64,000 nt of DNA, from sequence record PQ015379.1, one strand, 5' to 3'. Below are positions 7,606-26,080 of the stretch, in pieces. Numbering within the stretch: the first letter of the stretch is position 1; each line of letters begins with the position of its first letter. Below the pieces are notes generated by a model. It was given only the letters and a program-made list of their open reading frames with translations. It did not search any database and was not told the DNA's origin. Both the position numbers and the translations under genes were made by a program.

Positions 7606-10600
7606 ATGAACCGTATCAACTGGAATAAAACTCCGTTGGCGCAGCAAATGCACCAGCGCCGTCAACAGCAGGAAGCGGCCATGGCCCTCGATGCGTACGC
7701 GGCCCTTGCCCGTGCCAATGCTGACGACGATGAAGACAGCGACGAAGTAGACGATAGCTCTTCCGAGTTCGTGAAATCCATTCGCACCATTTCTTTGGAA
7801 CCGGCGCGCAATCTGGAATACGAGTCTTTCTTCTACCCGAAAAGAGAACGTAACTTCCTCGTTCCGATCCTCGAATCGCTGTCCGACGTGACGGCCAACA
7901 TCAACATGTTTTTCCGTTTCATGCGGCTGATGATGGGCCGGGCCAATAGCCTGTCCAGTGCTTCGCCGGAACAAATCGAAAACATTGCCTCGCAAATTCA
8001 CGTGCAGGTTTTCCAATCGAAGCGTACCAAAGGTTCGATTGAGCAGGACACCGTGAATTTCATTCGTGCCTCGCGCCGTACGGCCCACACGTTCCACAAC
8101 GTGTACCGTTCCAAGCGCTACAACGAAGGCATCGATATCGTGCTGATGGGTGCCGGTGCTGACCCTGAAAAAGAAGGTCTGCCAGCCCCGTATTTCGGTG
8201 TGGAAGATTTCCAGCTGGGCCGTTCGGAATATCTGTTCGAACACAACGATCATCCGATGACCGAATCGCGTCGTCGCGGTGCGTGGCAATCGCCGGTCGG
8301 TGAGCGCATTCTGGCCGCCGCTCGCGAAATCCACATGTTCCTGTTTGGCACCCTCGCCAGTTCCGAACGCATGATTCACCGTGGCGTTCCGCTGAATACC
8401 AACTTCAGCGATATCGAACAAATTTGGGTGAAAAACACCGGCATCAAAATTCCAACCGCTGGCGAAATCGTCACCGATATGGTGGTGGCCAACCCGTTTG
8501 CTGACCAGTTCCTGCAAATCGAACTGATCAAGCAGCCGTCGCGCAAGGTCAAAGAAGTCGTCAAGAAAATTCGCGAAGATGCTGCACGTCCGGGTTATGG
8601 TCAAGAACCACTTAGCCCGAGCGCAGTAAACGCGAAAATCAACGAAGCGTTGAACGGTGAAAATCCGAAAGCAACTCCGGAATCGGAACTGCTGAACCTG
8701 ACGCTGCGTACCTCGATTCGTTTCACCCTCGAATCGGATATCGCGCACTTCGTGACGCAGACCCCGGACAACGAACGTCCAAACCTGACCCGTGCGAACA
8801 GCTGGTTCTCGCTGTACATTGCACAGGTTCTGCGTGCGAAAGTTTCTGGCACTGGCAAGGCCTACAAAATCTCCAACGCCGCCGCAATCAAAATGGAGCA
8901 CATCCCGCGCTATGCGACTTCGGCCACCACGCTGAAACGCATCCCGGCCCTGCGTGAACAACACGGCTACGTCGTGGAGCGCACCAAAGGCAACGCGGAA
9001 AACATGTACATTTTGCCAAACGGCACGATGGGTGTTCGTCCGTCGATTGACGCGCTGCAAAAAACCACGCTGGCCGAAGATTTCGAGAAAATTTCCGAAG
9101 AACTTCTGGAACTGTTGAGCCGTCACGAAATTCCACTGGCCGCATTCCAAGAAAACTCTGGCGCCGCCTACTGGCCGTGGGTCGAAGCTAACGATCTGGA
9201 ACGCATGCAGCAGCTGGTAAAAGAACTGCACAGTTTCGACGGTTGTTCGCTCGGTTTCGACTGGGACTTCGGGATCAACATTCAGGCCACCAGCACACCG
9301 GGCCGCACCGTTACCAGCACCTCGGTTGGTTCTGTAACTCCGGATTCGCTGGCCATCGCTGACTGGCTCGGTTTCAACCTTGCCAAAGAAGGCGAAAAAC
9401 CGATGAAGCGTTCTTTCGCGCAAGCGATGTACACGCTGAATCACCACGAACACACGGCCTACGCATATTCGCAGGCTGAAAAAGTTTACGGCGCTGCACC
9501 TGATCCTGTTGCGTTTGCGGATTCGTCCATGATCGGCAACCTGATCGATCTGTACATGCGTCTCGCGTACCTCGACAACAAGGCACCGAAATTCCCTGAA
9601 ATTCTGAGCAGCGCAATGCGCGCCCTGAATTACGAGAAACTGCCGAGCGAGCCGGGCTTCGATTACAGTTCCAAGTATTTCGAATCGGTCAAGCCTGACG
9701 GCACCCTGCCTGACAACCGCAAAGGTAACGTGCGCGGTATCATCCTGTCGCTGTTCAAGACCACGCTGGATCTGGCGTCGGGCGCGCAGGGCACGCACCT
9801 GTGGAACGAAGTTTTCGAAAGCCTGAAATCCGGTGACAACAATCCGCGCATGTCGGAAGTCAGTCTGGAACTGGAAAACAACGAAAACTATTTCAACAGT
9901 TCGATTTCGACCACTGCTGAATTCACCCGCCTGTACAAGTATTTCGGCGGTCAAGTGTTCAAGCAGATTCTGGACGCGATCAACTCGGTTGAAATCGAGC
10001 ACTTCGGTAATGCCCGCGCCGGTCAAGCACAGGTGCAGATGGGTGAAATTCCGGATTATCCGGGCCAGCAATTCACCGTCACGCTGGATCTGAAGCCGAA
10101 CGCCGTTCTGTACCGTGACGTTCTGCCGTTCGCCGTGATGCTGGGCAAATACGCACCGAACCACGAAACCATTTTCGCCGAAGCGCAGGAACAGGTCGAA
10201 TCCATTCAGCCTGATCCATCGTTCAGCGCCGAAGATATTCAGGTGCCGGGCCTTGTGTCGGAAGATCGTGCGATTTTCCCACACCAAGAATCGGTGCAAA
10301 GTTCGCTGCGTAAGAAAAATCCGCCGACCTTCGCAATTCTCGCACTGGCCCCCGGTGGTGGTAAAACCGGTCAAGGTGTGATTGACGTTGCGTGCCTGAT
10401 GAAAGACATGAAAGAGGCTGGCACCGTGGTTCGTCCGCTGGTGATTTGCCCTAACGGTCTGATCAACACGTGGTGCGAAGAACTGAAGTATTTCCAAGGC
10501 GCAAACTGGAACGCGTTTCCGATCAGTTCGGACGTGCTTTCGCGCTGGACAGGCAAGAACGCGCCGGGTGAAAAATTCCTGACCGATCTGGCCACCAACG

Positions 10601-23737: not shown

Positions 23738-24008
23738 ATTTTTTCGCAAGCTTTTCGGTATGCGCAACTACGAAGAAGATTTTCAGGCGGGCGTTGCGTA
23801 CGCACAGGAACAATTGCGCCTGTACCGTGGCAACCTTTTGGATTATCACCGGCTGTGGGCTGAGTGCGATTCTGGTGGCGTGGAGCCTAGCGGTTTCGAC
23901 GCAGGTATGCGCCAAGTTTTGAGCATGCAAAACATCCCGCATCCGTTGGACCCACCGGAGAAGAACAATGCAGCATTTCATGACTGTTTATGTGGACGGA
24001 AAGCCTGA
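23727..24008 (+). CDS. Hypothetical protein
   Basis: AAAGGG RBS; short ORF in operon. Confidence 0.55.
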   Translation: MILEFFRKLFGMRNYEEDFQAGVAYAQEQLRLYRGNLLDYHRLWAECDSGGVEPSGFDAGMRQVLSMQNIPHPLDPPEKNNAAFHDCLCGRKA

Positions 24009-24282
24009 GCAGCGCGAACTGGATCATGTGGAAGTTGTGCCGCGTGGCAAGCTTCCGCGTCTGGTGCCGAAACTGCGCGAAGACGAAGAAATGCGCCGCA
24101 CCAGCGACGGTAAGGTGATCGTGTTCAAAACGCAAAAAACTGAGCGTTTTCTGACTTCGGTTATTGCCGATTGGAACGGCGGTGAGCATCAAACGTACAC
24201 CGCTGAATATTCCGATGGTTCGACCGAGCAGTGGACCGCCGATCAGTTCTACGCATGGAAGGCTGCCGAACGTGAATGGTAA
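23968..24282 (+). CDS. Hypothetical protein
   Basis: GGAG RBS 7 nt upstream. Confidence 0.6.
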   Translation: MQHFMTVYVDGKPEQRELDHVEVVPRGKLPRLVPKLREDEEMRRTSDGKVIVFKTQKTERFLTSVIADWNGGEHQTYTAEYSDGSTEQWTADQFYAWKAAEREW

Positions 24283-24622
24283 ACCACACATCAACGTCGG
24301 CACCGTGGGCCACATCGACTGGGGCTTGCATCCGCTGGCACAGGCGTTAGATCGTGTTCGTGCCTGCATTAAGATCCCGTGCGATCTGCATCCCAACGTA
24401 GCCGCCACCGAGTTTTCTGTAAAAACTCGCAAAGAATTGCAGCAGGCGATCTACAAGATGCTGTACGCGCCGACAGCCCACGATACTGTAAATAACACAT
24501 ACACCAACAAATTCACTAACGGACCCAATCCATATGGCCAAAGAAGTGAAGACCGTAAAAGCGGTCAGCAGTCTGCTGAAGCCACGGAAAAAGGCAGTAG
24601 TGGAGAAAGTCGCCGGGATTAA
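24272..24622 (+). CDS. 116-aa protein with EF-Tu-like N-terminal segment (GTG start)
   Basis: GGAAGG RBS; KPHINVGTVGHIDWG vs E. coli EF-Tu [15 protein letters not shown]. Confidence 0.7.
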   Translation: MNGKPHINVGTVGHIDWGLHPLAQALDRVRACIKIPCDLHPNVAATEFSVKTRKELQQAIYKMLYAPTAHDTVNNTYTNKFTNGPNPYGQRSEDRKSGQQSAEATEKGSSGESRRD

Positions 24623-25307
24623 AAAACCGAAGGGGACCGTGAGCGCCCCTTCGCGTATGCCTGCGCCAACCCTGCAATTCAAGTTCGATACGGCACGTGT
24701 AAAACTGCTGAAATCGCAAGGCGTATGCGGCACTGCATTGCAGGTCATGCGCCAACCGTTCTTGCTTGACGATGCGCTAGTCTCCATTACTCCGATGGTG
24801 CCTAAATGGCTACCAGAAGATTACGTGATTCCTAAAACCAGCGTGCGCCGCCAAATCGACGCGTGCTATCGCTTGTTGAACAACCCGTTGCACGGTTCCC
24901 CGATTATCGGTATTGGCTCGATGGTTACGGATGAACGCGCAAAATTCATGGCAATGAGCATCATGAATGCGGCAATTGATCAGCAGCGTTCCGGTTCGCA
25001 GAAAGGCAAAATGCTGCCGGTCTACCACCGGGTAATGAGCGGGTTCTATGATGAACTTCTGGCCGAGAAAACCCGCCGCAATATTTCCATGTTGATCATC
25101 GCCAACATTGGCCTTGATAACTCACAAATCAAACTCGATAAGGTCCGCGATCTTCTCGAAAAGTATGACAACATTCCGCGAATCGTAGTCGTCAATGGCT
25201 GCGACCCCGTTTCGTTCTTCGCGGAAAAAATGCGAATGCCCATGCAGTTTGCCTTGATGCTGAATAGCAAACGCAGTGACAAAGCCGATCTTATGGATAT
25301 GCTATGA
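24534..25307 (+). CDS. Degenerate DnaC/IstB-like AAA+ protein
   Basis: IIGIGSMVTDERAKFMAMSI (Walker A position), MLIIANIG (Walker B position), IPRIVVVN (sensor-1 strand), catalytic residues absent. Confidence 0.45.
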   Translation: MAKEVKTVKAVSSLLKPRKKAVVEKVAGIKKPKGTVSAPSRMPAPTLQFKFDTARVKLLKSQGVCGTALQVMRQPFLLDDALVSITPMVPKWLPEDYVIPKTSVRRQIDACYRLLNNPLHGSPIIGIGSMVTDERAKFMAMSIMNAAIDQQRSGSQKGKMLPVYHRVMSGFYDELLAEKTRRNISMLIIANIGLDNSQIKLDKVRDLLEKYDNIPRIVVVNGCDPVSFFAEKMRMPMQFALMLNSKRSDKADLMDML

Positions 25308-26080
25308 CAATCTCACGCGCCAAACTCGACGAAATCGAACAAGACGAAGAAAACCTCAATCGTTTTATCGAACTGCTGGAACGGGGTTACACCTACCTGT
25401 CCGCCAAATGCCAATACGCAATGGGCGGCATTCAGGATCAGGAACCCGATGATGACGAAGAGGAAGAATCCGAAGCGGAATTCGATATCGAAAAAGACAT
25501 GTCGTCAAAGGAACTGATGATCCTGAAACAGGAAGTCTTGGCCGATTTCGACCGCACCAATTTTGCAATGGACGACAACGAGTATTTCGAGGATTCGAAC
25601 GTTGAACAGGGGATCGACCCGGACAACGAAAACGAACCCAAGAAACGGCGCGAAAAGGTTGAGATTCAAATCAAAGAACTGTATCGCATGATCAAACAGC
25701 TGTCCCACCCGGATAAGCTCATGCGATACAGTGCCGAAGCGAAACAAAAGATCATTGCCATTTTCCACGAATCAACCGAATTCATGGATGATGACAATTT
25801 GGAGGCACTGGTATTCTGCTATGTGAAACTCCGAATCGCCCGCAATGAACCGCACAAGATTCCAGAATACATCGAGCATTACGTGCGTGAGCGCCACCGG
25901 CAAATCCTGCGGCATATGGGTTTCCTGCGTGAAAAGCCTTTCACCGAAGCAATCCTCGAATGGCATCATGGCAATGAGGAATGGGCCATCATTCTTTTCC
26001 GGCAATATCTGCGCGATAAGAAACGGCAGGATGAAATGGAAAAACAGGCAGCAGCCGACGACGATGAATTCTTTAGCTGA
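25304..26080 (+). CDS. J-domain (DnaJ-like) protein with acidic N-terminal region
   Basis: IKELYRMIKQLSHPDK followed by a helix-III-like segment. Confidence 0.65.
   Translation: MTISRAKLDEIEQDEENLNRFIELLERGYTYLSAKCQYAMGGIQDQEPDDDEEEESEAEFDIEKDMSSKELMILKQEVLADFDRTNFAMDDNEYFEDSNVEQGIDPDNENEPKKRREKVEIQIKELYRMIKQLSHPDKLMRYSAEAKQKIIAIFHESTEFMDDDNLEALVFCYVKLRIARNEPHKIPEYIEHYVRERHRQILRHMGFLREKPFTEAILEWHHGNEEWAIILFRQYLRDKKRQDEMEKQAAADDDEFFS

Follow-up and report, generated by a model that had tools for sequence, protein, structure and literature searches.

EF-Tu stands at the centre of several conflicts between bacteria and their phages. The Lit protease, acting with the T4 Gol peptide, cleaves EF-Tu at G59-I60, a caspase-like protease of type IV Thoeris cleaves it after R45 and R59, and Avs7 has EF-Tu built in. 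In the literature that we searched, no description was found of phage proteins built on the N-terminal segment of EF-Tu. Phage Lu11, the nearest isolated relative of the phage examined here, has an annotated gene of 72 codons, gp085 (YP_006382615.1), that is followed by an annotated middle/late promoter and then by the homologue of a 257-codon gene. We describe a gene in the same slot of Pseudomonas phage HRDY3 (PQ015379.1), a pond-water jumbo phage with a genome of 313,683 bp; the product of this gene is best read as a putative phage accessory protein with a host-derived module. The window, i.e., the whole stretch of DNA that was analysed, is 64,000 nt long, and positions given below are window positions (position in PQ015379.1 minus 186,000).

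A gene missing from the HRDY3 annotation

The annotation of PQ015379.1 leaves a gap of 252 nt between XDJ15218.1 (23968-24282) and XDJ15219.1 (24534-25307), and the small ORF at 24272-24622 is unannotated. The features of the locus are as follows.

23968-24282, + strand: gene of 104 codons just upstream (XDJ15218.1), also conserved in relatives, with a stop that overlaps the start of the small gene
24257-24262, + strand: Shine-Dalgarno-like GGAAGG, with a 9-nt spacer to the GTG, within the last codons of the upstream gene
24272-24622, + strand: small gene, 116 codons plus stop, the HRDY3 version of the Lu11 gp085-type gene (by synteny, codon usage, and sequence identity)
24281-24364, + strand: EF-Tu-like module, residues 4-31 (strand 24281-24319, degenerate P-loop 24320-24331, helix 24329-24364)
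24368-24469, + strand: linker and conserved helix, residues 33-66 (helix, residues 53-65, at 24428-24466), common to the nearest orthologues
24485-24494, + strand: ACTGTAAATA, core of a Lu11-type middle/late promoter, located toward the 3' end of the small gene, with the next gene beginning 40 nt downstream
24534-24622, + strand: overlap (89 nt, different frame) of the low-complexity tail of the small gene with the start of the 257-codon gene
24534-25307, + strand: downstream neighbour, 257 codons (XDJ15219.1), annotated as "DNA polymerase," the first gene past the late promoter

A preliminary description of this DNA had proposed a GTG start with a GGAAGG ribosome-binding site, and both were confirmed (GTG at 24272-24274, with the stop at 24620-24622); the translation that it quoted is exact over the 116 codons. 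As it also pointed out, the ORF track masks this start, which lies within a longer ORF of 152 codons beginning at a TTG at 24164. The TAA of the upstream gene (24280-24282) falls inside the new frame, where the two genes overlap. In alignments with the L013 and L118 orthologues, GGAAGG lines up with an identical hexamer at the same distance from the start codon, and the start codons (ATG in both relatives) line up as well; the position of the start is therefore homologous. Codon-usage log-odds were trained on the long ORFs of the window, real genes scoring 0.46 +/- 0.23 per 32-codon window; in its own frame the small gene scored +0.32 bits/codon over codons 1-32 and +0.45 over codons 33-71, compared to -0.4 to -1.1 bits/codon in the other two frames, the +0.32 standing against -0.7 and -1.0. 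Comparison of codons 33-66 with L009 gave a synonymous difference of 0.90 and a non-synonymous difference of 0.285, a sign of purifying selection, and the conserved helix (residues 53-65) gave a dN of 0.12 and a dS of 1.2 against L118. Residues 33-116 are 38-48% identical to their counterparts in L009-L011 and L013, and the orthologous gene was called in L118 and is annotated in Lu11. Considering the synteny, the homologous start and Shine-Dalgarno sequence, the codon usage, and the substitution pattern, we conclude on comparative grounds that ORF 24272-24622 is a real accessory gene beginning at 24272. An RNA element was also considered for this locus and was rejected (fold z-score of -1.0 and no Rfam matches).

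In Lu11-like jumbo phages, the slot of the small gene is flanked by the replication-helicase block and the tail-sheath operon's late promoter. The arrangement, in which the small gene is flanked by the 104-codon and 257-codon genes upstream of the tail-sheath gene, is syntenic in 11 relatives, and all 10 IMG/VR loci that were retrieved via the 257-codon protein have a small ORF in this slot. The slot's small gene is fast-evolving and is present in every Lu11-like phage that we fetched. The ACTGTAAATA motif at 24485-24494 is unchanged in 6 of 6 aligned relatives and coincides with the annotated Lu11 promoter. Five copies occur in the window (6687, 14597, 24485, 33470, and 62306), all on the + strand, where 0.05 would be expected; 11 more are found in the other pieces of the HRDY3 genome (8 on the + and 3 on the - strand), mostly along the local gene direction. 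The 3' third of the small gene holds the start signals of the late operon and, because the promoter core lies within that third, the small gene would be part of the upstream transcription unit. Overlap into the 257-codon gene is also seen in L009-L011 and most other relatives, while the small genes of L013, L118, and Lu11 end earlier. As for the downstream neighbour itself, XDJ15219.1 had no Pfam matches at E <= 10, and its annotation as a "DNA polymerase" appears unsupported. Its PaBG homologue is annotated as a "DNA exonuclease," and homologues were found in 80 phage records (Lu11, PaBG, and many Erwinia, Dickeya, Burkholderia, Xanthomonas, and Ralstonia jumbo phages).

An EF-Tu-like module with a degenerate loop

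When the HRDY3 protein was compared to PDB chains with phmmer, its residues 3-32 aligned without gaps to EF-Tu residues 8-37, with E-values of 4e-4 for a 37-residue EF-Tu chain (2hcj_A), 3e-3 for Thermus EF-Tu, and 1.3e-2 for E. coli EF-Tu. Over the module proper (residues 4-31 against EF-Tu 9-36), 15 of 28 residues are identical, in keeping with the gapless alignment and the GKT-to-GLH replacement that had been described before. The loop reads G-H-I-D-W-G-L-H, so that the Walker lysine and threonine are replaced by L and H; the G-x4-G-K-[ST] pattern is lost, and the length of the loop and both glycines are retained. Similarity to EF-Tu stops at residue 32, which agrees with the earlier view that the remainder of the protein has no relation to it, and motifs G2-G5 as well as domains II and III are absent from the small protein. 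With a full-length EF-Tu from a fetched viral contig as query, tblastn against the whole HRDY3 genome (in pieces) returned one match, at 24281-24358 (E of 8e-4), and no second EF-Tu-like piece, paralogue of the module, or partner with the rest of the G domain was found in that genome.

The HRDY3 small protein had no Pfam matches at E <= 10 and thus did not reach the gathering threshold of GTP_EFTU (PF00009; 26.5 bits), and a relative that also carries the segment, P0008, scored 12.9 bits against PF00009, likewise below that threshold. The preliminary description had held that the protein cannot be a GTPase, and this was borne out: the Walker residues are gone, the other G motifs are absent, and the Pfam score falls short. 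Since three defining features of PF00009 GTPases were tested and failed, the protein is not a member of that family; as judged from these residues, it is not a GTPase, and its module cannot bind GTP. The segment of P0008 alone matched EF-Tu with an E-value of 4e-7, and a profile of 11 segments matched bacterial and mitochondrial EF-Tu with E-values of 4e-10 to 1e-8, the next family being eIF2-gamma (8e-3). These two results put the resemblance beyond chance and, at the level of sequence, confirm a segment derived from EF-Tu (strand 1, P-loop, and helix 1). A likeness to the Ig-binding domains of staphylococcal protein A over residues 50-100 (24419-24571) was rejected, since its summed E-value of 2.5e-6 is made up of five stretches of E 14-300 each; the match is very probably noise from repeats. 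A single-sequence search of a large protein database with the HRDY3 protein gave no matches.

A mosaic gene in two phage lineages

By its position and by part of its sequence, we assign the HRDY3 protein to the Lu11 gp085-type family. A database of 5.8 billion proteins returned eight family proteins. The EF-Tu-like segment is absent from seven of these (P0001-P0007) and from 10 of the 11 orthologous loci, all of which begin with another N-terminal motif containing six invariant columns (alignment A4). This family motif is in turn absent from the HRDY3 protein. Comparison of the EF-Tu-like module to the family motif with hhalign gave no match, and this result, together with the presence of both elements in P0008, ruled out that the N-terminus of HRDY3 is a diverged form of the family motif. 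P0008 is a protein of 93 aa encoded at a fully syntenic locus (L118) on a contig of 320,190 bp (ERZ27245998 k119_167911), and its parts are arranged in the order family motif, EF-Tu-like segment (residues 30-57), and shared helix. The modules of HRDY3 and L118 are identical at 58 of 84 nt and 19 of 28 aa, with a dN of 0.26 and a dS of 1.13 (dN/dS of ~0.23, at a dS that is saturated). The strand and helix are conserved between them, and all three loop residues differ, including the second glycine.

The exact gene architecture with the module was found in two phages only, HRDY3 and the phage of P0008/L118. Conservation of the motif in homologues, on which the preliminary description had made its proposal depend, therefore has two sides: the motif is missing from 10 of 11 orthologous loci, and it shows purifying selection where it is shared. 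The module is N-terminal in HRDY3 because the family's own N-terminal motif is missing there, a loss that may be a sign of decay. The earlier idea of an N-terminal mimic does not hold as such, since the module occupies residues 30-57 in P0008 and is also internal in Wellington-type proteins. Instead, the comparison indicates that the segment is an inserted module, common to two lineages of a mosaic gene and having no need of a free N-terminus. At locus L013 (2637-2978), the small gene is longer and the conserved helix apparently occurs twice, one more sign that this slot evolves by the shuffling of short modules.

The module in other phages and in bacteria

A degenerate DNA pattern for an 11-residue core, with W at the position of an EF-Tu histidine, was found in 8 viral contigs (mostly 230-280 kb) and 8 metagenome contigs, and the exact pattern had 0 matches among 185,579 species genomes. 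The view that the W-variant is restricted to phages was nevertheless withdrawn, as near-variants occur on chromosomes of CPR bacteria. The carriers of the W-core are mutually unrelated and comprise the Wellington gp216 family (85-109 aa), 257-aa and 96-aa proteins, a 129-aa family, and a protein of about 320 aa in which the module is located at the C-terminus; for the L019 and L020 proteins, relatives were not found in isolated phages. In an alignment of 11 segments from unrelated proteins, eight columns are invariant, including N, G, T, G, and H, and the underlying DNA varies synonymously. Allowing any residue at the W position gave 91 viral loci. Full-length EF-Tu-like ORFs account for 32 of these, 10 are cut by contig ends, and 4 are tuf fragments; the other 45 are short or otherwise unrelated ORFs without further EF-Tu similarity, 25 of which have no lysine at the Walker position.

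When 1.84 billion representatives were searched with a profile, only 11 clusters were recovered at E <= 1e-10, three of which (P0131-P0133) consist of two tandem EF-Tu N-termini, while the rest are the module families named above and P0008. Among the PHROGs, phrog_27465 (59 residues) matched HRDY3 residues 4-30 with an E-value of 1e-4, and in phrog_12626 residues 2-20 only were aligned (E of 0.08). Other phage proteins that carry only this segment, for which the preliminary description had suggested a search, thus exist in the 45 viral loci and these two PHROG families. In the Wellington-type proteins, the module is internal, and its 24 columns are their sole similarity to the HRDY3 family (probability of 95%). 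The 129-aa family resides on CPR-bacterial chromosomes between dnaB and cysS, and its loop ranges from W-G-R to H-G-K or is partly deleted. Together, these sequence comparisons indicate that the module is recurrent and selected and is not confined to phages; its occurrence on CPR chromosomes argues that it is not specifically an anti-host device.

Two routes by which the module might have been acquired were rejected. Recent DNA transfer from other phages does not fit, because the sequence around the module shows only random identity and its core differs at synonymous positions, and neither does capture of tufB beside tRNA genes, as there are no tRNA genes in the window or in 14 segment-bearing loci.

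Several further observations were made in the course of these searches. The IMG/VR loci L038-L117 include 32 viral contigs, many of 200-600 kb, that encode full-length EF-Tu-like ORFs. Jumbo-phage contigs of ~225-233 kb carry a separate family of 200-270 residues that begins with the segment (L036, L042, L052, L060, L111, L019, and L026) and has R at the lysine position and H or W before the glycine. In PaBG (L073; 258,139 bp), a distant relative of HRDY3 whose genome paper makes no mention of EF-Tu, an ORF on the - strand has the segment (8290-8321) ~80 residues before its end, with the lysine kept. The "small EF-Tu" entries P0032, P0041, P0053, P0057, P0104, and P0111 appear to be out-of-frame continuations of ordinary tuf genes; they are probably assembly or sequencing errors and should not be counted as mini-proteins. 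The CPR protein (Ca. Yonathbacteria; P0013, P0017, P0129, and P0130) has 126-129 residues, a degenerate loop, and a very basic tail, and its loci (L120:6001-6390 in GCA_001823575.1, L121, and L122) always fall in the dnaB/cysS interval among ribosomal-protein genes. In Wellington (L003; gp214-gp221), gp216 is found among small early-type genes, adjoining two acetyltransferases and with a macro-domain (Appr-1-p processing) protein nearby, a neighbourhood typical of host-takeover or counter-defence genes.

Possible role and alternative explanations

Conservation of the module across its carriers extends to the strand, the loop's first half, and the hydrophobic helix face; variation is tolerated at the phosphate-binding positions. 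Comparison of the sequences shows selection that retains the strand and helix of the module and not its phosphate-binding residues. Such a pattern would be expected of a unit that still has to match something with a shape made for this part of EF-Tu; it is unlike that of a nucleotide binder or of a generic strand. AlphaFold did not yield a confident fold for either protein (pLDDT of 57 for HRDY3 and 60 for P0008); the HRDY3 model has two helices (residues 21-32 and 53-65), and in both models the strand and loop of the module have no structure, and because of this and the low pLDDT, docking of the module is a conjecture. Searches with the PADLOC models gave no matches for the HRDY3 protein, for P0008, P0011, and P0013, or for the adjacent gene on either side; a weak PDC-M07A match (E of 0.006) came from 25304-26077, the second gene downstream.

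The explanation that we favour overall, at a probability of roughly one half, is that a host-derived module has been kept in this protein for binding a partner. An in-frame piece of EF-Tu of ~28 codons would have entered the small gene in the lineage to which HRDY3 and a 320-kb relative belong. In HRDY3, which is without the family motif, a GTG start coupled to the upstream gene would then have placed the EF-Tu piece at the N-terminus. The protein may be a small, largely flexible adaptor, whose EF-Tu-like strand and helix could dock onto some partner that, in the normal course, packs against this part of EF-Tu or recognises it. Candidate partners are EF-Tu from which a defence protease has removed the N-terminal piece, or a protein that handles EF-Tu, and the outcome would be competition or mimicry during infection. 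What is known of Lit, type IV Thoeris, and Avs7 makes a role in EF-Tu-centred conflicts plausible, by inference only. The first option of the preliminary description, a decoy or competitor, is putative: the PADLOC and tblastn searches gave no signal of defence or of a partner, and the AlphaFold models were uninformative. Its second option, a captured fragment that was repurposed, fits the anatomy of the protein. A broader proposal, in which phages and some CPR bacteria share a class of mini-proteins built as molecular mimics around EF-Tu strand 1, a dead P-loop, and helix 1, is speculative and rather doubtful; such a mimic could slot into protease-severed EF-Tu or titrate a factor that recognises the segment.

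Among the alternatives, the one that deserves most attention is that the tuf fragment was captured as raw material and now serves as an ordinary strand-helix block, functionally unconnected to EF-Tu and its partners. That the module is found in five or more unrelated proteins, among them the product of a CPR gene in a housekeeping region, would suit this explanation, as would the freedom of the loop to vary and the fact that neither PADLOC nor tblastn of the HRDY3 genome revealed an EF-Tu-related partner or defence signal. A generic strand, however, needs no fixed polar and glycine positions of EF-Tu, yet eight columns are invariant in the 11 segments, and the profile is specific to EF-Tu as opposed to other GTPases. 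We consider such exaptation possible, at odds well short of even. That the HRDY3 copy is instead a decaying or untranslated remnant, having lost the motif and original start and retaining EF-Tu-like letters as a relic in an unexpressed ORF, is unlikely. It is true that the gene is unannotated in GenBank, that the only widely conserved motif of the family is missing, that the start is GTG, and that the tail extends 89 nt into the next gene. Nevertheless, 116 codons are open with gene-typical codon usage in the module and in the rest, the Shine-Dalgarno sequence and start are positionally homologous to those of relatives, the module has a dN/dS of ~0.23 (at saturated dS), and an overlapping tail is normal in this family.

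The retention of loop length and both glycines in HRDY3 might also point to a minimal phosphate- or nucleic-acid-binding peptide, with an anion-binding loop that dispenses with the lysine, comparable to engineered minimal P-loop proteins, and several other short phage versions do combine an intact G-K-[ST] with basic tails. This is very improbable considering that the nearest relative alters all three loop residues, second glycine included, that part of the loop is deleted in one CPR member, and that the HRDY3 tail is acidic/polar rather than basic. Least probable of all, to the point of being negligible, is a chance resemblance to EF-Tu: the single-sequence E-values are modest (4e-4 to 1e-2) and Pfam is without a match, but the P0008 segment reached 4e-7 and the segment profile 4e-10, and the matches are to EF-Tu only, without gaps across 28-30 residues.

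The locus adds a missing gene to the HRDY3 annotation and shows a phage accessory gene assembled from modules, one of them derived from one of the best-conserved host proteins. Recurrence of the EF-Tu piece with relaxed nucleotide-binding residues, in 45 viral loci, two PHROG families, and a CPR family, points to a function of which the literature that we searched gave no description. Since several defence systems cut EF-Tu or make use of it, a selected look-alike would be a concrete, if hypothetical, candidate for a new phage-host interaction, and were it to act as a mimic, it might modulate translation shut-off immunity.

Comparison with described systems

The HRDY3 protein keeps the strand and the hydrophobic helix face of the EF-Tu G domain (PF00009); it has 116 residues in place of ~394, however, and is without the Walker lysine and threonine, the other G motifs, and the other domains. 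It shares with Lu11 gp085 its slot, its coupling to the upstream gene, and a 3' end lying across the late-promoter motif, and with the nearest members of the gp085-type family it also shares the linker and helix. Unlike gp085, to which it has no BLASTP similarity, it carries the module and is without the N-terminal motif. P0008 is the only protein found that likewise combines the helix of this family with an EF-Tu-like module, but it keeps the N-terminal motif, has the module internally and with other loop residues, and stops before the next gene.

Outside the gp085-type family, the proteins of phrog_27465 (Aaphi23 ORF27 type) and phrog_12626 are similar in being small phage proteins whose sole recognisable part is the N-terminal segment of EF-Tu. 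Most of their members, in contrast to HRDY3, retain G-K-T and exceed the Pfam GTP_EFTU threshold, and their tails are unrelated to that of HRDY3. The Wellington gp216 and CPR 129-aa (P0013, P0017) families share the 11-residue core, carry W where EF-Tu has histidine, and lack the Walker lysine; their matches to the window are 56% over 25 aa and 67% over 24 aa. Beyond the module, however, their sequence is unrelated to that of HRDY3. Finally, as context and not as evidence, two of the EF-Tu-centred conflicts involve cutting of EF-Tu just past the segment that is copied in HRDY3.
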